A stretch of 64,000 bases of DNA. Origin: Paramoeba atlantica (taxonomy: Eukaryota > Protista > Discosea). Location of the stretch: assembly GCA_977017575.1 (NCBI GenBank), contig CDRNVI010000012.1, positions 992,001 through 1,056,000 on the forward strand. Reading direction: 5' to 3'. The position numbers and the translations under genes were made by a program. Below are positions 461 to 50,280 of the stretch, in pieces. The stretch's first letter is position 1; every line of letters begins with the position of its first letter. Below the pieces are notes generated by a model. The model was not told the DNA's origin. It searched no databases and saw only the letters and a program-made list of their open reading frames with translations.

Positions 461-1474
461 ATGAAAAAGTTGTTCCAACTGTGGCTTACGCCTACGTCCG
501 TCCTACCACTCCCCGGTCTCTACATATTTCGCGAAGCATTTTCTCCACAGAATGTCCCCAGTTGTTTACCTCCTTCAGAAGCGGCCGCGCGGTACGTCAG
601 CGGTTCGTTGCTTCAGTCATCCTCACCTGAGACCTTAATGATACAGCTCATGCGAGAGAACTTCTTACCATATCTTATTCAGCGCATTCGTAGCTTCCCC
701 TCCGACAATATACCCTCCGAGACGGAAGCTTCTCCCGTAGCCCAATACGCATCCCAGTTATACGCCCTGGAAACCATATCTGCACTGCGTCACAACTTAT
801 CCAAAGAAGACACGTTCCGCTCGGTCTTACAATGGTTTCAGTACCGTCAGGCGTTTCGATCCTCGGTACATCTAATCCGGGACAGTCGATGTTTACATCA
901 AGCGAGTCCCGAGATTTCGTATTTTGATTTCATCAAAGACATGGGTTCGTTGTGTGCGAAAACAACCGACCTGGACTCAACTTGTGTGAACGTTCTTGGT
1001 CTCACGGGAAAGGGGTTGGCAAACACTAGTCATCGAGACACCGCGGTGGGATGGGATCAGATGGGTCAATTCCTGTCTCGTAAACTCTCTCCTGAGATTT
1101 CCATGATTACACAAACCGCAAAAGACCTGCAGGCGCAGCAAAACAAAATGACACAGAAAAGTTTTGTTTGGTGCTTCCTGCGATTGTGGTGTTGTGTGGC
1201 GGTGGCCTGGCGTGGATCTTCCAGCATCGATGACCTGCAAAGTGTCTTCGCGTCCCACCAGTGGGTGTTGACCACACACTACATCACACGGACGTGTGAG
1301 GAGGTGAGGGGGAGGTTGAGCTCGGAGAAGGCGCTGTCCGAGACCCGCACGGGTTCTCCCTTGACGCAGGATGTCATGCACAAGTTGTTGTGTCGTACCC
1401 CGTTGGATGTGCCTCCGCCAGCGACGATACCGATCCCAGCGAAGCGTTTGCTTCCGACGGAGGAAGGAGTCTAG
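461..1474 (+). CDS. Hypothetical protein, 337 aa
   Basis: Long ATG-initiated ORF on the gene-cluster strand; no motif recognised. Confidence 0.65.
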   Translation: MKKLFQLWLTPTSVLPLPGLYIFREAFSPQNVPSCLPPSEAAARYVSGSLLQSSSPETLMIQLMRENFLPYLIQRIRSFPSDNIPSETEASPVAQYASQLYALETISALRHNLSKEDTFRSVLQWFQYRQAFRSSVHLIRDSRCLHQASPEISYFDFIKDMGSLCAKTTDLDSTCVNVLGLTGKGLANTSHRDTAVGWDQMGQFLSRKLSPEISMITQTAKDLQAQQNKMTQKSFVWCFLRLWCCVAVAWRGSSSIDDLQSVFASHQWVLTTHYITRTCEEVRGRLSSEKALSETRTGSPLTQDVMHKLLCRTPLDVPPPATIPIPAKRLLPTEEGV

Positions 1475-1680
1475 GGAAGTTGTGTAAAATCGTGTAGTAT
1501 AGAAAATAGGCTTAAAAAATCTACATTACTCGAAATTTTTCTCGCTGTTTCGTTGAATTTAGTTGTTGGAAATTTATTGCACATGTTTAGATCAAGCATT
1601 CTCGACGGATGAGACTCAAAAAATGGTAGTATATTTTTGAAGGTACGCACGAATCGTAAAGCGTTTGCATGTTCTTGCAG

Positions 1681-1717
1681 TCTACTTTTTTATACACCCT
1701 TTTTTTATATTACATAG
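1681..1717 (+). promoter_or_regulatory. Probable trans-splice acceptor (polypyrimidine tract + AG) for the V-ATPase e gene
   Basis: T/C-rich tract ending TACATAG at 1717, 19 nt before ATG 1736. Similar tracts precede 13068 (AG 13063-64) and 22337. Confidence 0.45.
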
Positions 1718-1735
1718 ACTTCAATCCGTGCAGCG

Positions 1736-1939
1736 ATGCTGTTCATTGGAACACTCGTTTTTATTTTCATTGGGACTGCACTGGCTGCAACGCTACACTT
1801 GTGGGCATCGGAACGCACTCGCCTTTTAAGGATCCTCATCCCCCTAGGACTTTTTTGTATGTGGCTATCCTACGCAATAATTTATGTGGCCCAGATTCAT
1901 CCGTTAATTATCCCGACGCGCATCAGGCAGTCTCATTAA
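1736..1939 (+). CDS. V-type ATPase V0 subunit e (Vma9/ATP6V0E-like)
   Basis: 67 aa, two hydrophobic helices, C-terminal CMWL.YAI.Y.AQIHPLI.P matching the subunit e MWL..a..y.aQ.nPL..P pattern. Confidence 0.85.
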   Translation: MLFIGTLVFIFIGTALAATLHLWASERTRLLRILIPLGLFCMWLSYAIIYVAQIHPLIIPTRIRQSH

Positions 1940-2291
1940 TGTTATGACTATTATAGTCTTAAGTCCTGTATATTACCACGTTGAGTCTGATGAAGCGTAG
2001 TATAAATATACATAATTCTGGTGTGCGTTTGGGCGCCTTTTTCTTAGTAAAACACGTAATTGAGTATTGGGACATTTCTTTGCCGCTTCCACGGGTGTAC
2101 CGAAGTGTTCAAACATTTGTAAAAATTAATTAAGCTATACATTTTAGAACACCCTTTCGGAATTCACACTCTTGGGATGCTGCTGAAGCAAACAAATTCC
2201 ATTTATTTGCAATAAATCAACAAATTTGCAACGAATCAATAAATACCTTTTGATTATTCAGGTATTTTACAACGACTATGCACTTGAGCAA

Positions 2292-2948
2292 ATGCTTCCG
2301 ACTATTTTATTTTTCAGTGTCGATGTCCCACTGCGAGCAAGTAGAGTGCGTGGCTCTGCCCTGCCCCAGGAATATATGCTGTCTCGATTCGTAAATACTC
2401 TGCTTATTAAAGACAAGTCATGGACTGATAATACACCTGCATGTGAATGGAAATTCGTCGAATGCGATACTGATAAGCATGTTACTTCGCTAAAGTGGCA
2501 AAGCAACATGTTTCAAGACTCTCTCGCTGATTCATTAACTATAAAGGGTGAACTGCAGTGGGTGTACACACCTCATACGTTGCTCTTCTTTAGAGCTTAT
2601 ATGCAGGCTTTATTTGGCTCTCTACATCTCTCTTTACTGCCGCCTCGTTTAATAACATTTGACATCGCTTTGAATAGATGTAGTGGGCATTTAGATCTGA
2701 CACATTTGCCCTGTTCATTGGTAACTTTGGATTTAAATTTCAATAAATTTGAAGGTGAAATCGATCTTTCGTGTCTTCCTGCGTCTTTAAAAACCCTGAA
2801 CCTGTGTTCTAATGAACTTTATGGTAATGTAGATTTGACTAAAATTTCTAAGGACATAGAAAGTATAAAACTTGCCAAAAATTACTTTTTCATACCCGAA
2901 ACTATACCCGAAAAAGTATTTTTCGGAATTCAAAAGAATAAACAATAG
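2292..2948 (+). CDS. Leucine-rich repeat protein, dispersed family copy 1
   Basis: SRVRGSALPQEYML, cap ACEWKFVEC, repeats like G.LDLT.LP.SL..LDL..N.F. ORF track starts at 2226; first ATG 2292. Confidence 0.85.
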   Translation: MLPTILFFSVDVPLRASRVRGSALPQEYMLSRFVNTLLIKDKSWTDNTPACEWKFVECDTDKHVTSLKWQSNMFQDSLADSLTIKGELQWVYTPHTLLFFRAYMQALFGSLHLSLLPPRLITFDIALNRCSGHLDLTHLPCSLVTLDLNFNKFEGEIDLSCLPASLKTLNLCSNELYGNVDLTKISKDIESIKLAKNYFFIPETIPEKVFFGIQKNKQ

Positions 2949-3365
2949 TTTGAGAATATTACATCAAATCTACTGTACAGTACTTGGTGTCTATGCCCTG
3001 TAGTACTTGGGTGTACATGCTCTGTGTATTGGGGGATAATACAGTATGTATGAGCTGCACGGGGTTTATTACAAAAACAAATTCGTAAGATACTACTGAG
3101 CTCCAAGAATAACATTTCGATAGCATTCATTGGCTTGCATTCTTTATTCATATTTATTGCGGGTGGCGGGCATTAAAAAACAGACCTTTCTTTGTTTTTT
3201 GTTTTATTTAAAATCACTCATAATTTACATACTTGTTATGTATGTATGTATGTACTTGTTATGAAAAGTTGTGAAAAGTTATGAAAAGGAGAGTACATTG
3301 TGCGTCTTTCGTATACAAAAAATACTTTTAACTCTTATTTTTCCACTTTTTCGTTTCTAGTACAC

Positions 3366-4313
3366 ATGGCCCTGCGCCGCTTGTTAGATTTATGCCGAAA
3401 GCATCATGCCACGACACCCATATCTAAAGTACGGGAAAGTTTATCCCAATTGGATTTTCATGGAGACATATATCCGCTCTTAACGGGAAATGAGTTACGT
3501 GGTAAGAATCAGTGTGACGAGAAAACAGTTACGTCAGGAAAAGCGGATAGAAAAAAGCGTTTTGAAACTTTTGAAGTAGCGAAATATCTTGCTGACAACT
3601 CTCCAATAAGGGGGGACAATGATGTAGACACACAATATAAAAGAATAGATTTCAACCCTCCGCACAAGAAAATACGTCGATCCGTTTTTCATGAAAAGGC
3701 AAAGTTTCTTAAAGAGGCCAATCAACGTTCGATAGGCACAGTATGCTTTTCAGAAAATGTTTGCCATAGTCTCGTGCTTTTCGCACTCCCCGCTCACACA
3801 ACTATTCCTCTTCACGATCATCCTTCCATGCACGTGCTTTTGAGAGTGTTGTGCGGTCGAATAAAAATTCGTGCATTTGACCCTATAGGTTCTTGCGTCG
3901 CGAAAAAGATTACAGGAACTTCTTCGGGACCTCCTTTTGGGAATTCAGTGGCTGTTCATTGTGTGTACGATAGATGGGTCTCAAGCGAAGAAAATGTACT
4001 CCAAATTCATCCCAATGCAAAAGGTGGGGTCTTTCACGAGATTAGTACACAAGATGAGGTTGGTGTCTTTATTGATTATATTACACCACCGTATTACACA
4101 GCACCATTACATCTTCCTTGTACTTATTATACCCTAGAAAACATTTCCGGGCCAATGCAAGTTAAACAAAATTCTAAAGAACAAAGCAGATCCTCTGAAT
4201 CTATTGATTCATCTACTCCCGAGTCATGTACTGAACAGATTTTTCATTTACAGGCTCTTTCACGAGAACCTAGCATCCCAATGCATTCTCTTTCGATGGA
4301 ACATTCAGCGTAA
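3366..4313 (+). CDS. Cysteamine dioxygenase / plant cysteine oxidase-like thiol dioxygenase (PCO_ADO cupin)
   Basis: IPLHDHPSMHVLLRVLCGRIKIRAFD, GGVFHEI, FIDYITPPY motifs. ATG 3366. Confidence 0.8.
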   Translation: MALRRLLDLCRKHHATTPISKVRESLSQLDFHGDIYPLLTGNELRGKNQCDEKTVTSGKADRKKRFETFEVAKYLADNSPIRGDNDVDTQYKRIDFNPPHKKIRRSVFHEKAKFLKEANQRSIGTVCFSENVCHSLVLFALPAHTTIPLHDHPSMHVLLRVLCGRIKIRAFDPIGSCVAKKITGTSSGPPFGNSVAVHCVYDRWVSSEENVLQIHPNAKGGVFHEISTQDEVGVFIDYITPPYYTAPLHLPCTYYTLENISGPMQVKQNSKEQSRSSESIDSSTPESCTEQIFHLQALSREPSIPMHSLSMEHSA

Positions 4314-4415
4314 GGAGGTACGTTCCTGAAGGAAAAAGCGCGTAATAATTTCGCCACGTAGAAGTGATATGTTTTTAATAGTTAGGTGTAAGGAATTTTT
4401 TAAAACGTTTATGAT

Positions 4416-5363
4416 GTGTGTTTCTATGGTGTGTGTTGCATACTCAATGTAGGTTTTTTATATTTTCTCCGACACTTTATGGAAGCGGGATCTACCTTCA
4501 ACCCTTTCTTGTTTTTCGGATTCCCCGACTGGTTGACTAATATTTTCACTTTCTTCAGTGAAGAGCAGATATTGAGCAGAAAACTGGTGAAATTGGCAGC
4601 CAAATGTGGTTGGTCAGGTCTGAGAGATCGTGCACTGGAACAGCCTTATTGTGATACAGCAGAATCCATATTTAGTTCCGTAAACAACAGAATTCGCGAT
4701 CGACTTCCACCTAAAAATATGGATGATAATAGTTCTGCTACTGAGGCCTCCAATGGCGAGGGGCAGGACACTGAAAAACTTGTTCTTTCCAGTGCATCAC
4801 TTTCTGCATCGGGAATACTTTGCAATCTGAAAGCCTCTTCGGCTTTAAACGAATCAGAGAATGCTTATCTAAACTGGTTTCGTCGCTTACCACACGGCAA
4901 ATGCAATTCGCATCTCATCTCTGTTAATGTTGAATTCGTAGAACAGTGGCCTAAAGCCCGGTATGTGGAATGCTGGCGAAACAAAGTGGAAATTCCCAAA
5001 GATTTCGAAAGCCAAATACCATCGCGGGCAGAGTCCACTTTTCCTGAAAGAAAATCAAGTCCAATGGAACCGGAATTTTGTATTGGGGAAATAGAGGTCG
5101 TACACCAAGCGTCTTCCGATGTCGATGATGCGAATCCAGAGAAGGGTGGATACGTAGTTGATTTCTCTACATTAAAGCGAAACGTATCATCCGTGAATAT
5201 CAATAAAAATGTAAGTACACGAGATCAGACGTTTTCCGTGGAGGATGACAAAAATTCTGGCAATGCTACGCAATTTCTGATCGTACCTGGACCGAAGACG
5301 GAACCTTTATGTCTTACCGTTTCAACTTATAGTGTATCCACCATTGTATCGTGCGGGTCATGA
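4416..5363 (+). CDS. Hypothetical protein, up to 315 aa
   Basis: Long ORF on cluster strand; true start probably a downstream ATG; no motif recognised. Confidence 0.6.
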   Translation: MCFYGVCCILNVGFLYFLRHFMEAGSTFNPFLFFGFPDWLTNIFTFFSEEQILSRKLVKLAAKCGWSGLRDRALEQPYCDTAESIFSSVNNRIRDRLPPKNMDDNSSATEASNGEGQDTEKLVLSSASLSASGILCNLKASSALNESENAYLNWFRRLPHGKCNSHLISVNVEFVEQWPKARYVECWRNKVEIPKDFESQIPSRAESTFPERKSSPMEPEFCIGEIEVVHQASSDVDDANPEKGGYVVDFSTLKRNVSSVNINKNVSTRDQTFSVEDDKNSGNATQFLIVPGPKTEPLCLTVSTYSVSTIVSCGS

Positions 5364-6217
5364 ACCTAGCCTCTAAAAGTCTAGCATTTATCATGGGACC
5401 TTCTTTGGTATTATTCTTTCTAACTAAGCACGTAATGCATGCAGCATAGGCTCTCATGTAACAAAGGTTTGCACATTTTAGCATATTCTAGTCTGTCCTA
5501 GATTTACTTTTATTTTTTTGATTCGGTTTCTCACACGTTTCAAAAATTTGAAATTGGAACTCTCTGGGTTGAGAATCATTGTATACTGAATTAAAATAGT
5601 GGCTACAGCACACTGGCATTCATGCTTCAATACGACTTGTCCGGAGTGTTGTGATGCGTATTAGCACTCGACAAACATTTATGTGAAGTGCACATACAAG
5701 ACTTGTTAGTTAAACTTCAGATAGGAATTTAGGAGCATTTTTCCTGGTGGGTTTTTTCATGATTGAGCAAGTGTAATAGAGTATCACTCAGATTTGTACG
5801 AACGTTCAATTTTATTTACTCCGACGGCAGCATACAAAAATGGCGCATATGGAATATACATGCAATGTATATACAACACATTGTACAATACAATGTATTG
5901 ATCCAGATTTTAGAAAAGAGAATATAGACTTGAGAAATTAATCTTTTTTCTCTTTTTTATTACATATTTTCTCATAATCATTATGAGAAAGTAAATACTT
6001 ATTAATAGCGAAGAAAATAGGCGCTTCAGACAGTATCAGTATCGTAGCTATTCTGTACCAGTATATGAACATGGGTACATCATACATAATATGGTCCATA
6101 AAATTTATATGGTCCATTTATCTTTATTGCCATCTTATAGTAAAATAACTATAAATAATCGCACTTATCGTTAGAGACAATGTTGTTAGGGTTTCTGGTA
6201 CTTGTACGCATCTATCC

Positions 6218-6934
6218 ATGACATCACTCGATTCAACTACCCCTTCAGGAGATTCAATATTTCTTGTCCTGACATATTTACACCCGGAGATGCTTCCCGA
6301 GCATCTAACGCAGCTTCTTTCCCCTTTTGCCCACATCACGTCAGTGGATATATGCCACAATCCACCCCCTTCACGTGGCACCGTTCAAGTGGAATCTACT
6401 GAGGCTGCAGATCTTCTCATCTCCGCGCTGCACGGTCGATATTCTCTGTGCGCGCATCCCCTTATTGTGGCGTACAGCGAGAAAACAGCCCAAATTTCGC
6501 CTTTTGGCATCGCGCACAGTGTCACTATCAGAGAGTTAATTGGCGGATCCGGACGACCCTCAGGAGTGCTATCACACTCTCCTCCCGGAGTGCGTTCATC
6601 TTTTCCCAATGAAGCTTCTGCGCTACGAACGGGCACAACTTCCGCAATGCCTTCAAACCCTGTTTACTCGGGAATTTTTAACCCATCACTACCTTCCCCG
6701 ATAGCTGAAGCGGTTCCCTTATCTTTTCACGTTGCACCCCCCTTAACCACGCACTTACATTCACATCCATATCGCAATTCTACATCACATCGAAACGAAA
6801 ACCCTGTTTTATTAACTGGCTTACATCGCGGAGTCAGAAGTACGAACGGAAATACCGGAGCAAGAGAGATGCAAAAATTAAATCCCAGTGCACAACCTTT
6901 TGAACCATCGCGCGCAGAGCACCAAAATAAATAA
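6218..6934 (+). CDS. RRM-containing RNA-binding protein with C-terminal PAM2-like motif
   Basis: N-terminal RRM-like pattern (IFLV..L..E...E.L.QL.SPF..I..V.I...RG..QV.S.EAA..LI..LHG) and C-terminal KLNPSAQPFEP. Confidence 0.7.
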   Translation: MTSLDSTTPSGDSIFLVLTYLHPEMLPEHLTQLLSPFAHITSVDICHNPPPSRGTVQVESTEAADLLISALHGRYSLCAHPLIVAYSEKTAQISPFGIAHSVTIRELIGGSGRPSGVLSHSPPGVRSSFPNEASALRTGTTSAMPSNPVYSGIFNPSLPSPIAEAVPLSFHVAPPLTTHLHSHPYRNSTSHRNENPVLLTGLHRGVRSTNGNTGAREMQKLNPSAQPFEPSRAEHQNK

Positions 6935-7184
6935 GTTATTTCAGCATTTTTTCTGTTCTTGAGAGATATTACTGTCGTAAAAAACTTTCTATGTGAAGTA
7001 CATTGATTCAGGTCCTTCTTCGGTTCTTTTTTATTCTATTTGTTAATCGCTGGGACTTCCTCGGATCACATTTACGAAAACATCACCTCGTTTTTCCTAC
7101 TTTGAGTAGCAGCGACGTAATCTTCTACTTTCCTTTATGATGATAGAAAACAAATGATGTATATTTCAGAAGTCTGACCCACTG

Positions 7185-8327
7185 ATGCAACGCACTTTGC
7201 TCCGTTTTCACGGGCTCCTTCAATTTCCCTGTGGCTCTGGTCACCTCACGATCGGTCGCGGAACTGAATTTATGGTCCCCAGCAACGACATTTACCACGA
7301 TCCCGTAGCGCTGCGTGAACGTCTCGACCTCGACGGCTTTCTATACTTTAAAGACATTCTTCCCCGTGACCACCTCACACGCTCCCTCCTCTCCCTACAA
7401 ACCCAACTCCAACACCTTGGTATACTTCTCCCCAACAGTTTTGAATTTAATCCTCACTACCACAACCTTAAAACCAACCCACCCCAAACAAACCCCCCAA
7501 ACCACCCGCCCTCCGAAATCCAACCTCAATGCCACAACAACAACAATAACAACAACAACAATGATAACAACAACAATAACAACAACAACAATGATAACAA
7601 CAACAACAATTGCAATAACAACAATAGCATCAACAACAATAATAATAACCACAACAACAACAACAACAGCAACAATAATAATCATGACCACAACCCCCTC
7701 CCCCCACCCCCCCTCGACCTCCCCTCCCTCACCCACGGCCCCAAACTCCTCTCCATCGTCCGCCACGTCTTCGGCGCCCCCGTCCGCCCCTTCCCCGCCC
7801 CCACCGCCGCCCTCCTCGAGGTCGCCCCCCGCGCCGAGCCCCACACCTTCCACATGGACGCCGTCTACCTCACCCGCGGCACCCGCCTCGTGTTAACCGC
7901 CTGGCTCCCCCTCACCGACACCCCCCTCCGTCGCGGCCCCCTCGTGTGTGTGCGCTCCAGCAACTCCCACCCCAGCACCGAGAGACTGCGCCACACCTAC
8001 GGGCTCTACGACGCCCACAGCGGGGCCGTCGCCGGGGCCGGGGGGTACAGCGCGGACCCCCGGGAGGTGGAGGGGATGGGTCGGGGGTGCGTGACGGCCT
8101 CGATGAGGGCCGGGGACCTGGTGTTGTTCGGGGTCTACACCATGCACGGGTTTCTAACGAACCAGTGTGCCGGGGTGCGGGTCTCCGCGGAGTCGAAGTG
8201 GTTTCTGGAGGGGGATGGGGCGGGACCGGATGAGAGGTATTGCGGGCATAGGGTGGGGGGTGGGGGTGGGGGGGTGGGGAAGGTGATGAGTTTGGAGGAG
8301 GCAAAGAGGACAGTGTGGGGTTTGTGA
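7185..8327 (+). CDS. Phytanoyl-CoA dioxygenase (PhyH)-like 2OG-Fe(II) oxygenase with poly-Asn insert
   Basis: LRERLDLDGFLYFKDIL, HTFHMDAVY (HxD), LTAWLPLTDTP..RGPL, MRAGDLVLF...MHG, RVSAE.KW. Confidence 0.8.
   Translation: MQRTLLRFHGLLQFPCGSGHLTIGRGTEFMVPSNDIYHDPVALRERLDLDGFLYFKDILPRDHLTRSLLSLQTQLQHLGILLPNSFEFNPHYHNLKTNPPQTNPPNHPPSEIQPQCHNNNNNNNNNDNNNNNNNNNDNNNNNCNNNNSINNNNNNHNNNNNSNNNNHDHNPLPPPPLDLPSLTHGPKLLSIVRHVFGAPVRPFPAPTAALLEVAPRAEPHTFHMDAVYLTRGTRLVLTAWLPLTDTPLRRGPLVCVRSSNSHPSTERLRHTYGLYDAHSGAVAGAGGYSADPREVEGMGRGCVTASMRAGDLVLFGVYTMHGFLTNQCAGVRVSAESKWFLEGDGAGPDERYCGHRVGGGGGGVGKVMSLEEAKRTVWGL
7536..7682 (+). repeat. (AAC/AAT)n coding microsatellite encoding poly-Asn
   Basis: About 48 mostly AAC/AAT triplets, including a duplicated AACAACAACAATAACAACAACAACAATGAT block. 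Confidence 0.95.
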
Positions 8328-8524
8328 GGAAAGGGGGGATGGGGGGAAATACGGGAAGCATGTTTTGAAATGGTTTTGATCACATTCAAGATAAAGCCCC
8401 TTTCTCAAAGAAGGTTTCTTCTTTTATATTCGTTATGTTCTTTTTTTGTCGAGACCATCCCATTATTTATACCAACCTATTCTCCTACACAATCTGTTTC
8501 AACTTTACACACACACACACACCC

Positions 8525-9235
8525 ATGCTCCACCGCACCTCTCTGCGACGCTGGTTGCGTAACCCCCACGGGGACAAGCAAACCCCACCCGAGACATTTT
8601 TTCCCTACCGAACGGAAAAAATTCTCTTCAAGTATTCCCACGGGGAGAAGTACGAGGGACCGTTGTGTCGACGACTAAAGAAGCCAGACAAGTACCGCCC
8701 CCATGGCATCCCGCGTGATCTCGGGGAGTACCCTCGGAACTACGTGCTGCGACATCTCTACTTCAACCAACCTATCAGTGCCCCCGGGTTATGGGAGGTG
8801 TTAAAGAAACAGCCCGACGTGCCGCTGGACTCCCGACGTCACCTTACGCTGCTGCTCAAGTGGGCACGTCTGGAGGACTGGGTTTTCTTTGAGAAGAACC
8901 AGGACAGCAATCAGTGGGTGTGTAACATTACACGGAATAAGTACCCCGAGGTTCAGACCCTGGTACGGGAATACCGTGACGCGGAGAGGAAGGCGGAAGA
9001 GGAAAAAAAGATGAGCCAGCGGCTGGAGGAAACAGAGAAGGAAAAGGAGGTGAGATTTCTTAGGAAGCAAAATATGCAGCTTTTACAATGGGAGCTTATT
9101 CAAGCCGCCGAGCGTTTATATGAGTATGACCCGGAGGAGTATCTTCAATTACCGTTTGTAAAAGAGCCGCACGTGTATCGTCTCCAATGGTATAAGCCGG
9201 ATTCTACTGAACTCTTAGATTTGTCTGGAAAATAG
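8525..9235 (+). CDS. Hypothetical protein, probably mitochondrial
   Basis: MLHRTSLRRWLR resembles a short Arg-rich kinetoplastid mitochondrial presequence; C-terminal coiled coil. ATG 8525 (ORF track 8435). Confidence 0.65.
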   Translation: MLHRTSLRRWLRNPHGDKQTPPETFFPYRTEKILFKYSHGEKYEGPLCRRLKKPDKYRPHGIPRDLGEYPRNYVLRHLYFNQPISAPGLWEVLKKQPDVPLDSRRHLTLLLKWARLEDWVFFEKNQDSNQWVCNITRNKYPEVQTLVREYRDAERKAEEEKKMSQRLEETEKEKEVRFLRKQNMQLLQWELIQAAERLYEYDPEEYLQLPFVKEPHVYRLQWYKPDSTELLDLSGK

Positions 9236-9276
9236 TATTGAACTTAAAAATATTTATTAAGTTGGAATCCTTTAGC

Positions 9277-9357
9277 TGCATGATGATTGTATCCAATAAT
9301 AGCGGAAACTGCCCTCGGGCCTTCATGAAAAGCTTTACTCCAAAGTGCACTGACGCA
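9277..9357 (+). ncRNA. Candidate C/D-box snoRNA
   Basis: Box C ATGATGA 9280-86; D'-like CTGC 9309-12; GCCC-TC-GGGC hairpin 9311-20; C'-like ATGAAAA 9325-31; box D CTGA 9350-53; short terminal TGC/GCA stem; intergenic. Confidence 0.45.
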
Positions 9358-9543
9358 AGGTTTTCCTACTGTAGAAGTAATATGGTAAATTATCCGAAAA
9401 GTTAGTTAGGAGTTAGTAATTTGCACTTTTATGTTCATTTCGCTTTCGAATTTGTATTCGGTTTTCTTCATTAATGTTGGTAACTTTGCAGTTAAGGCGC
9501 AACACATAGTTTCGCGAAGCCACTCAATCCGGAGACGCAGTAA

Positions 9544-10794
9544 ATGCTGGATAATGTGAACAGCTCATACTCTTCCCTTTTCTGGTTACCTACCATAGAG
9601 AAGGAATGTGCCACAGCGGGGTTATATGAGTCAGTACTTTGTGCACGGGAAGTAGAATATGACTCTCTCAGCAACACACCACGGTGGTGTAATGAGCTGA
9701 TGATAGTATCTGAGCGGATGTACTCTGACGCGGTAAAAATTAAAAGCAACGTTGCATCACTTTCTCCCAAAGCATATCGAATCCGACGAAATGTCCTCTT
9801 TCCTGAATGCTCTTCGGGATCGAGGAAATATCGTAATCGAGCTGGAGATAAATTGGAGGCAGTGTTAGAGGAAAGTGGTATACTGAATTTATTGCGATAT
9901 TCCACTGCATCTGAAAAAGAATTTGTTTTTGTGGATGTATGCGGCGGGCCTGGAGCATTTTCGGAAATGTTATTTGCGTGGGGCAAAGAAAATCTTCCGA
10001 ATTTAACCAGAATCATTGGTGTGGGGATTACTTTACGTCCTACGGAACAGGGAAGTGTTCCCAGCTCTGTAGCGTGGTATCCTTCGCTTCTAGCCAAAGC
10101 AACACCCAGTACCTCGGAGAGGAGTTCAACTTCTGTGACAGAGTGTTTTCTACCCCTCTGGGGTAACGACGGCACAGGCAACCTTCTTTTGTCGAAGAAC
10201 ATAAACTCTTTTACGGAGGAATGTCTGAAAAATACGGCTCGTTTACATCATTCCTTGCCTCAGACAGACTCCAGGAAATTTTGTTCAAAAAATGGCGTAG
10301 ATATAGTGGTGGCCGATGGTGGGTTCGATGTAAGTGGGCAAGAGGCCCTTCAAGAGGTCCTCTCGGCACCATTACTGCTTAGTGAGGTCATTCTGGCGCT
10401 GAAAACGCTACGACAGGGCGGAGCACTTGTTCTCAAAGCGTTCGACACAATAACCATGTTTTCGGCCAGCCTTTTATTCATACTATCGCATTGCTTCGAG
10501 CGTGTAGGCTTATGTAAACCACTTCGATCACGGGTTGTCAACAGTGAGCGATACATAGTTGCGGTTGGCTATCGAAAAAGTGATCTTGGCAGTGGTTTGG
10601 AAGACAAACTAATTCCTAGACTTATGACTTTTATTACTTACAGAGAGAGCGTGGAATTTCCACAAATTCCAAAGACACTGGTGGATGCCAAGGTAATTTT
10701 GAATCATAAAGCTTTTTTAAATTCACTCCGGGCGGCATCTATTTATTGGATGAATCGACAGATTAAAAGTTTACGTCTTATATTCGACGACTAG
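9544..10794 (+). CDS. MTr1: FtsJ/RrmJ-family cap-specific 2'-O-ribose methyltransferase (MTr1/CMTR1-like)
   Basis: FVDVCGGPGAFSE (SAM binding), VVADGGFD, GGALVLKAFD, KPLRSRVVNSERY: K-D-K-E tetrad context. Confidence 0.8.
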   Translation: MLDNVNSSYSSLFWLPTIEKECATAGLYESVLCAREVEYDSLSNTPRWCNELMIVSERMYSDAVKIKSNVASLSPKAYRIRRNVLFPECSSGSRKYRNRAGDKLEAVLEESGILNLLRYSTASEKEFVFVDVCGGPGAFSEMLFAWGKENLPNLTRIIGVGITLRPTEQGSVPSSVAWYPSLLAKATPSTSERSSTSVTECFLPLWGNDGTGNLLLSKNINSFTEECLKNTARLHHSLPQTDSRKFCSKNGVDIVVADGGFDVSGQEALQEVLSAPLLLSEVILALKTLRQGGALVLKAFDTITMFSASLLFILSHCFERVGLCKPLRSRVVNSERYIVAVGYRKSDLGSGLEDKLIPRLMTFITYRESVEFPQIPKTLVDAKVILNHKAFLNSLRAASIYWMNRQIKSLRLIFDD

Positions 10795-11190
10795 TGAAAT
10801 TCAACATGGGACGAGGTACGGCCGTATCCTAATGGTAGAATGCTTTTAAAAGTCAGATGCGGCGTTCTTTTTGAAATCACAAGTACACTCGTGAAACCGT
10901 AAAATTTAGTTCATAGTACCCCCCTCTAACAACTAATTATAAATTACCCTGTTGTCAGGATTTATAAATACTTCTTATTTATAAACAAAAATGAGTCTGC
11001 TCGAAAGTTAAAGCAAAACAAGATAACTTATCTGAGCGGCTCGGAGCGGCAAGGCAGTGAAAAATACGAAAATCTGAAATTTTTTTTCACCGCTTTCACT
11101 CTACATGTTAAGCGGGTGCCTCGGTGTACTATGTCTTCATCACGGAAGTAATAACCTCCGTTATCAGACAATTCGGCTATTTCCATTCTT

Positions 11191-11518
11191 ATTGAGTAAT
11201 ATGCAGCACTATCAGGCCACCACACTCAATGGTACCTTGGGCAGTACACTCATCTAGACCTTCGCCCAAAATTTTATGCACACATTTTTTTGTTCTACCA
11301 CTGGAGTATGTACATCGCCTGTGACGGATCAATTGAAATATCAAATACAGAACAAATACGTTTCTGTTCTAAATGTGTAGCAATGAAAAAAACAGGCATA
11401 TCTTTCCAAAATGTTCGAACTAAATAGGGGTATAAAATTTTGGGCGAAGGTCTAGATGAGTGTACTGCCCAAGGTACCATTGAGTGTGGTGGCCTGATAG
11501 TGCTGCATATCACTCAAT
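11191..11518. mobile_element. Foldback/MITE-like element with 87-bp inverted arms
   Basis: 11191-11277 is the reverse complement of 11432-11518 with one mismatch; 154-bp spacer; no TSD seen. Confidence 0.75.
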
Positions 11519-12576
11519 GGTACGAGTAAGATTGTCCTGCTTCAAGGGACCACGAATACTGAACTGTTCGTTGATTTTTCATACGCTAATAATGAAGAAT
11601 AATGCCACACAATGCTCCTAGCCGCTCAAAATGAGTGGATTACATGGGGATCTGAATTCGCCAGAGATGAACGGGGGAGGAGAGTTCGCGTCGCAAGTTG
11701 ACGAAGATCTTCTCTGTTAATGAGATTTGCACGATTTTAGAATGTACAGCCCATTAGGCGCACCTCGGAGCCCCAGAACACATACAGAGAACATCCAAAA
11801 AGAACGAGTTTTCCAAAAAGTCGCGCAACTCGATTCACAGGTGTTCTGGAGCTCTAAAGTCAGGTCAAATCGGAATGAGCAAGCATACCACAAGGTTAAG
11901 CCATTCCTTGGTCGACAGCATGCGTAGGCGCATATAGACATCAATCAAGGCACAAGAAAGAGTTCCGCTAGTATTCATTTGAAGGTACATACTTCGTTTT
12001 TATGCATCAGTAAATTGTGTTTTTCGTCTAAAAAATCTTACCTCGAAATTGCAAAAAAACTGTTCACATGTTTTTCTTTACTTGCATACGATCACACTTT
12101 TGTTACAAAGCCGATTGAGTCGGAAGCTCTATGGCAACATATACCTAGTACCCACGCGTACACTACTCTGATATACTACTTCAATGCACACGACACCTGG
12201 CCACAGGGAAACACCAACAACAAAAAAGTGTCAAACATGTGAACAGTTTTTTTGCATACTGTATGTTCCATTCCGTAGATGTTCATGAACGGATTATGGT
12301 ATTTTGCACGCCCATCCATAGTAGCTTCTCCTCTTCAGTGATGATTCTCTCCAAACTTAAAACGTGGGTCAACTGTCTCCACGAGGAAAGCTGCTCTAAA
12401 GCAAATTTTACGGTGTACAAAGGTTTCAATGCAACCCTTGTTTTCCAGATCAGCCGTGAAATCCAGCTTGTCGCATCACGAACCGTTACCTCACACTGTG
12501 GTTTCTTTATAACCTTGTCTTTAGTCCACTCTTTGATTTTTGAGTTCTTCATGCGGGACTGAAGATTTCCATTATC

Positions 12577-49450: not shown

Positions 49451-50280
49451 TTGGCTCGCAGTGGCTGGCAGCGTTTGACAGCGTACGGCAGCGTATGACA
49501 CGAATTTGAGAAAAATGAAATTAAATTATTGGCCGCACTTGTATTTGAAAAGGAAAAATTCTACTAGAATTTTTTGTTTTACAAAAACATCGCCTTTCAG
49601 GAACCTTTCACCTTCAATACTCAACTTCAATTCAGTCTGAACTTCAATTCATCACCGAATTCAGCACAGTCCCTTCAGATTTCAATCCTTTCCGCACTGA
49701 GTTCACGTTAAAAAGAGCACGAACGGCTACTTTCGTCTTTGCGCAGGTGACCATTGAGCCGAGCTTATATCACCGCCCCGTTTAGTTCCTGCAGCAAGAG
49801 CTGAAATTCTGCATAGATCCGCTTGCGTGGCATGCTACAGGCATCTGCGAGAGCGCCTAGGAGGCTTTTAGTGTTCTCATGCAAACATCCACCCGAAAGA
49901 CCTAGCACACATTGAAAGCTATCAGACCGGGATTTTTCCTGTTCTGACATATGTATCTTGTTTTCGTTCATAGTAAATCTCACCTGTGGCCCAGTACACG
50001 ACGTTGTCTGGGCCGGATCGACGAAAGGACCGTCCGACACACGTTTTTTCGTGAAGTTTTCGATGGTTCGAATTTCACTCAGCAAGCTTGACCGCACCGA
50101 GACCCCGCCGAGACCGTACCGAATCCCCACCCGCTGCCCCTGGCATGTTCGGGTAACCAGCTGGTTTGTCTTCAGGGAGAAAGGCTCTATCCTATCCTAT
50201 CCTATTAGGCCGATTTGCGTCGGCTGAAAGTGCGACTGCTTCGTTTTTCGTGAATTTTCTCTTAGGTGAGTCTTCTTCCT

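Follow-up and report, generated by a model that had tools for sequence, protein, structure and literature searches.

A candidate dual-guide C/D-box snoRNA gene with predicted rRNA targets, next to an MTr1-like gene of a Perkinsela-related kinetoplastid

Results

Genes and features at the locus

Within the analyzed stretch of DNA (64 kb; hereafter the window), we examined a 308-bp intergenic gap that lies between two protein-coding ORFs of the same strand (8435-9235 and 9544-10794) and houses a C/D-box RNA candidate of ~80 nt at positions 9277-9357 (+), thus in the orientation of both flanking genes. Named homologues of the downstream ORF are annotated as cap-specific mRNA 2'-O-methyltransferase 1 (MTr1). 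The closest of them belongs to Perkinsela sp. CCAP 1560/4 (45% identity), with trypanosomatid and Bodo proteins being more distant, and by this protein affinity we regard the source of the DNA as a kinetoplastid related to Perkinsela. Contig ctg4015l of ENA ERZ24900291 carries the identical DNA. The features of the locus are as follows.

8435-9235 (+): upstream ORF, 266 aa, no Pfam family
9277-9279 (+): terminal stem, 5' half UGC, pairs with GCA at 9355-9357
9280-9286 (+): box C, AUGAUGA, perfect RUGAUGA (sequence read and layout finder)
9287-9302 (+): spacer with guide 1 (D' guide), 16 nt; core 9289-9300 = GUAUCCAAUAAU
9303-9306 or 9309-9312 (+): degenerate D' candidates, CGGA or CUGC, respectively (sequence read)
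9311-9320 (+): internal hairpin GCC-CUCG-GGC, between D' and C' (MFE and centroid fold)
9323-9328 or 9325-9331 (+): degenerate C' candidates, UCAUGA or AUGAAAA, respectively (finder, at most one mismatch)
9332-9349 (+): spacer with guide 2 (D guide), 18 nt; core 9338/9339-9348 = (C)UCCAAAGUGC
9350-9353 (+): box D, CUGA, perfect (sequence read and layout finder)
9355-9357 (+): terminal stem, 3' half GCA (sequence read and stem count)
9544-10794 (+): downstream FtsJ/cap-1 methyltransferase (MTr1-like) ORF, 416 aa (Pfam FtsJ, E = 4e-26)

The C-D'-hairpin-C'-D layout that a preceding sequence-only reading of this DNA had described ahead of the MTr1-like CDS is indeed present, with perfect boxes C and D and degenerate candidates for D' and C'. 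The latter two boxes are usually degenerate in C/D snoRNAs. Boxes C and D are 74 nt apart and the two guides are symmetric (16-18 nt), while the terminal stem is weak, as it comprises 3 bp only and is offset by 1 nt (unpaired C9354 after box D). Apart from this hairpin, which is small, folding does not exceed that of shuffled sequences (z = +1.07), as suits an RNA whose guides must remain single-stranded. Searches against Rfam returned no snoRNA family, neither for the window at the gathering threshold nor for the candidate at E ≤ 10, trypanosome families included; the best local match of the candidate was a partial one to archaeal sR46 at the C-box end (14.2 bits vs. a threshold of 50).

A search of sequencing runs for this stretch returned none recorded as RNA. 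Contigs of sequencing run X1, which is an RNA run by guess only, span 8575-9272 and end 5 nt before the stem of the candidate, and a pyrimidine tract with an AG is found at ~9460-9491, ahead of the MTr1 start codon (ATG). Together, these features place the candidate as a snoRNA processed from a polycistron would be placed. DNA contigs of this organism from other samples show no difference within 9277-9357, which is uninformative at a divergence of ~1 difference per 100 nt. Just after MTr1 (~10,840-12,000), the contig depth of the DNA runs rises about tenfold and many loose contig ends occur at 10,917-11,074, which points to an inserted dispersed repeat. In addition, a single contig from DNA run X5 connects position 10529 back to 8829 (1701 nt back), which may reflect either an artefact of assembly or a local duplication present in that sample.

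Chance expectation of the box layout

For an estimate of how often such an arrangement arises by chance, we used a layout finder that requires perfect C and D boxes 59-119 nt apart and a stem of at least 3 bp, with first-order Markov simulations as the null. The real 64-kb window contained two candidates of this C...D-plus-stem type vs. 1.35 expected by simulation. When C' and D' boxes in plausible positions were additionally demanded, the candidate at 9277-9357 alone remained, with 0.065 expected per 64-kb window. The box layout alone is not beyond chance, since 0.065 per window still amounts to dozens genome-wide, and the verdict on the candidate therefore hinges on its rRNA targets.

A reference set of kinetoplastid-type rDNAs

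We scanned metagenome contigs with a conserved LSU block that contains the complement of guide 2 (AAAAGCACTTTGGANNGAGAGT), which yielded at least 119 rDNA contigs. Five of these (L131, L053, L035, L015 and L051) carry the kinetoplastid SSU 5' signature ATGCTTGTTTCAAGGA, as used in kinetoplastid primers, and they constitute our kinetoplastid-type rDNAs. For two of them, L131 and L053, Rfam confirms the rDNA identity through SSU, 5.8S and LSU matches. Both guide targets were thus assessed on the metagenome rDNA of relatives. ORFs in the L131 rDNA have no identical counterpart in the other kinetoplastid-type rDNAs.

The kinetoplastid-type rDNA unit L131, which comes from a metagenome, is 11.7 kb long (stored as the minus strand; oriented 1001-11400). 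Its sarcin-ricin loop lies ~6.6 kb past the LSU start, so that long spacers probably interrupt the LSU, as they do in trypanosomatids; the Rfam LSU model aligned over 3.5 kb only.

With this reference at hand, another unit in the window can be described. At 49597-49655 (-), just after a CRE-like retrotransposon, we observed a 59-nt C/D-like unit (GTGATGA...CTGA...CTGA) with internal ATTGAAG repeats, whose D guide TGAAAGGTTC is complementary over 10 nt to the L131 5.8S rRNA. The unit may represent another snoRNA, or its match may be due to chance.

Guide 2 matches LSU domain I in the canonical register

The core of guide 2 is a perfect 10-nt complement to GCACUUUGGA in LSU domain I of L131 and L035, and a perfect 11-nt complement to GCACUUUGGA(G) in L053, L015 and L051. 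This match occupies the canonical register, positions 2-11/12 as counted upstream from box D, and position 5 faces the C directly before UUUGG in GCACUUUGG (LSU nt ~421 of L131). The duplex is predicted at -19.8 kcal/mol. With shuffled guides, 221 of 20000 trials (1.1%) gave a 10-mer match in this register; the match is, however, partly circular, as the rDNA loci had been chosen with a pattern containing the guide-2 complement. Judged from these contigs, kinetoplastid-type LSUs carry the complement of guide 2 in a conserved core block. The sequence-only reading had named GCACUUUGGA as a stretch of trypanosomatid LSU rRNA and proposed that the second guide pairs with it. The stretch is genuine, being a conserved LSU domain I block across the whole rDNA set with the kinetoplastid-type contigs included, and the proposed pairing agrees with an antisense match in the right register in all five kinetoplastid-type rDNAs.

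Guide 1 matches the SSU 5' domain of one relative

The core of guide 1 (9289-9300) is a perfect 12-nt complement to AUUAUUGGAUAC at SSU nt ~140-151 of L131, just 5' of the conserved GGAUAAC. With A9301 bulged and GCG at 9302-9304 paired as well, the duplex with the SSU extends to 15 bp at -20.1 kcal/mol, a value that none of 2000 shuffles reached. This match played no part in the selection of the rDNA loci. Matches of at least 12 nt were obtained for shuffled guide 1 in 30 of 5000 cases (0.6%), and only 0.1% of the natural 12-mers of the window have such a 12-nt complement. Among the five kinetoplastid-type SSUs the match is found in L131 only, and the sequence preceding GGAUA differs from lineage to lineage.

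Between the two possible D' boxes, we infer that CGGA (9303-9306) is to be preferred over CUGC (9309-9312), because it retains the GA that a k-turn requires and directly adjoins the SSU duplex, whereas with CUGC the target C would fall on the last position of the duplex, which is unfavourable. The CUGC that had been named as the D' box from sequence inspection is present in the RNA as the less favoured alternative.

Multiplying the layout (0.065), the guide 1 match (~0.01) and the guide 2 match in register (~0.01-0.04) gives a joint chance of ~1e-5 per window. The two rRNA antisense matches hence lift the candidate above chance and, together with the perfect boxes and the layout, they support its assignment to the class of C/D-box RNAs, as originally suggested.

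The spliced leader of the source organism

Guide 1 had initially been interpreted as antisense to the spliced leader (SL). Both halves of this comparison are sound as far as the letters go: the guide sequence TGTATCCAATAATAGCG is present at 9288-9304 as described, and the T. cruzi SL segment named for it, CGCTATTATTGATACAG, is genuine and printed in at least 11 T. cruzi papers. Guide 1 is the complement of this segment at 16 of 17 positions, with one extra base. The comparison that bears on function is the one with the organism's own SL. We recovered the latter by fetching related retroelements of the same assembly with the RT protein of the window and comparing their 5' ends; the RT protein itself had no identical copy elsewhere, and no canonical SL relics were found within the window. 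Four independent 5' ends (L008, L011, L012 and L132) read ...(ATAAAG)ATACAGTTTCTGTACCTTGTTG directly ahead of the element body. From these we obtained the 3' 28 nt of the SL, ATAAAGATACAGTTTCTGTACCTTGTTG, which is common in its full length to three of the four retrotransposon 5' ends and has the canonical kinetoplastid core CAGTTTCTGTAC. The recovered SL resembles the Perkinsela SL primer, AAAATAGTTCAGTTTCTGTACTTAATTG (PMC5601477), which likewise lacks the T. cruzi-type segment (PMC5601477). As a by-product, the 3' half of the source's SL can thus be read from its retrotransposon 5' ends.

Two of these ends show additional SL-derived arrangements. At L012:747-772, stacked partial SL copies occur at the retrotransposon 5' end (...CCTTGTTG followed by a second CTTGTTG), and at L132:~640-700, CACTGTATAAAGATACAGTTTCT is repeated ahead of the full 28-nt SL piece.

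At the position of T. cruzi TATTATTGATACAG, the source SL reads ATAAAGATACAG... in all four independent retroelement heads. Guide 1 accordingly pairs with GATACA(G) only, i.e., 6 nt plus one G-U pair, and the best duplex between the two (-8.4 kcal/mol) is matched by 395 of 2000 shuffled guides (20%). Furthermore, all five known bases upstream of GATACA mismatch guide 1, so that a contiguous duplex of at least 10 nt cannot form, whatever the missing 5' ~10 nt may be. The apparent SL match is explained by the SSU segment ACGCAUUAUUGGAUACC, which closely resembles the T. cruzi SL segment ACGCUAUUAUUGAUACAG. The own SL thus lacks the segment to which guide 1 had been thought antisense. We dropped an SL-targeting role of guide 1, given a duplex no better than those of 20% of the shuffles.

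Gene order in relatives

The gene order PhyH, unknown ORF, MTr1 is kept in all four relatives compared (39-46% MTr1 identity). In none of them did the gap before MTr1 contain an alignable C/D unit, and the motif formed by guide 2 and box D was absent from the loci of all four (~44 kb). With the C/D RNA missing from these syntenic gaps, the adjacency of the candidate to MTr1 looks lineage-specific and most simply incidental. In a contig of the Perkinsela CCAP 1560/4 type, a homopolymer of ~34 C lies between the PhyH gene and MTr1 (L003:3701-3730).

Discussion

We consider it probable (roughly 0.8) that the candidate is a solitary dual-guide C/D snoRNA, not annotated before, that directs rRNA methylation with both of its guides; that it is an rRNA-guiding C/D snoRNA of some kind, the variant with an active LSU guide alone included, appears highly probable. 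In favour of a real snoRNA weighs the expectation that a kinetoplastid genome should hold about a hundred C/D snoRNA genes, as compared with the 99 Nm sites of T. brucei (PMC13487219). Moreover, T. brucei is known to have intergenic snoRNA genes that are solitary and share the strand of the adjacent genes (PMC3273796, PMC13487219).

The snoRNA would be cut from a polycistronic precursor between the two protein genes, would assemble with fibrillarin/NOP1, NOP56, NOP58 and Snu13 on its C/D and C'/D' motifs, and would guide two ribose 2'-O-methylations of rRNA. Its D guide would pair with LSU domain I (GCACUUUGGAG) and specify Cm at the last C of GCAC (LSU nt ~421 in L131). The D' guide would pair with the SSU 5' domain at nt ~137-151, just upstream of GGAUAAC, where a CGGA D' box would direct Um to the U preceding AUUGG in AUUAUUGG and a CUGC D' box would direct Cm to the first C of CGC. 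Under this model, the 18S rRNA of the source would carry CUAUUAUUGGAUAC(A) at nt ~135-150 as the target of guide 1, and the organism's own rRNA would show the same or longer matches to both guides.

How firmly the SSU can be named as the second target depends on the weight given to a match found in L131 alone among five kinetoplastid-type SSUs, in a stretch that is lineage-variable. If this match were coincidental, the RNA would be a real C/D snoRNA with only the LSU (D) guide acting on rRNA and with a D' guide that is an orphan or directed to an snRNA, a tRNA or a pre-rRNA spacer; the degenerate D' box, which leaves the +5 target unfixable, would be in line with this. Such a coincidence is improbable in our estimate, since a 12-nt match by chance is rare (0.6% of shuffles, about 1% for natural sequence), and the match is antisense, falls within the mature SSU, uses the spacer between C and D', and is lengthened to 15 bp by the flanking CGC. 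Still less probable is that C- and D-like motifs have merely come together in intergenic DNA and that no small RNA is made. C...D with a 3-bp stem is indeed expected 1.35 times per 64-kb window, and neither an Rfam match nor a counterpart in the loci of the four relatives speaks for the candidate. For the full layout, in contrast, the expectation is as low as 0.065 per window, and it shrinks by a further factor of roughly 1e-4 once the two independent, suitably placed antisense matches to mature rRNA are taken into account.

The idea that guide 1 pairs with SL RNA as a methylation guide or chaperone, in functional connection with the SL cap methyltransferase encoded next to it, had an understandable appeal. 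The 16/17 complement with one extra base concerns a genuine T. cruzi segment, SLA1 sets a precedent for a small RNA acting on SL RNA (PMC3273796, PMC13487219), and the recovered SL stops short of its 5'-most ~10 nt. These points are outweighed by the own SL, which differs from that of T. cruzi in four retroelement heads, offers only GATACA(G) for pairing and precludes a contiguous duplex of at least 10 nt, the remaining one (-8.4 kcal/mol) being matched by 20% of shuffles; by the Perkinsela SL primer, which is also devoid of the segment (PMC5601477); by the SSU match that guide 1 has instead; and by the adjacency to MTr1, which is not conserved in relatives. We therefore regard an SL-directed function as very unlikely. 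Equally unlikely, in our view, is a combined role as an SL chaperone of the C/D type, in which the D' guide, besides SSU methylation, would form a bipartite, bulged pairing with the SL, using GAUACA and the unrecovered 5' ~10 nt, and so link SL maturation to the cap methyltransferase. The suggested tie to the cap enzyme is consequently not supported, whereas the rRNA-guiding snoRNA stands as our preferred reading.

If this reading is correct, a deep-branching and poorly studied lineage of kinetoplastids gains one previously unannotated snoRNA gene together with two predicted sites of rRNA methylation. At the same time, an idea that is attractive but unsupported is removed, namely that a C/D RNA coupled to the cap-4 enzyme acts on the spliced leader. 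To our knowledge, snoRNAs of the Perkinsela-related lineage are undescribed, and searches of paper texts and supplements for the guide or target strings, and for trypanosomatid Nm or snoRNA tables, gave nothing usable. Human SNORD26 and SNORD81 (28S Am389 and Am391) target the same LSU domain I block, GAAAAGAACUUUGAAG, with target nucleotides that presumably lie a few bases upstream of the predicted C, and their likeness to the candidate would be limited to the antisense element.

The comparison with SLA1, which pseudouridylates and chaperones the trypanosome SL RNA, reveals differences in both class and target: SLA1 is an H/ACA(AGA) RNA, whereas the candidate is of the C/D type and lacks significant complementarity to its own SL, leaving as the only shared idea that of a small guide on SL RNA. 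Closer parallels are found among the C/D snoRNAs of trypanosomatids (T. brucei and Leishmania; PMC3273796, PMC13487219). Unlike these, the candidate has no match to curated Rfam families, trypanosome ones included. It is like them in its RUGAUGA and CUGA boxes and its size (~75-80 nt), its C' and D' candidates are degenerate as theirs are, and it likewise carries two rRNA antisense elements with predicted targets set by the distance from box D. Its location, too, is that of trypanosomatid solitary genes, namely the coding strand of a polycistronic unit, between two protein genes.
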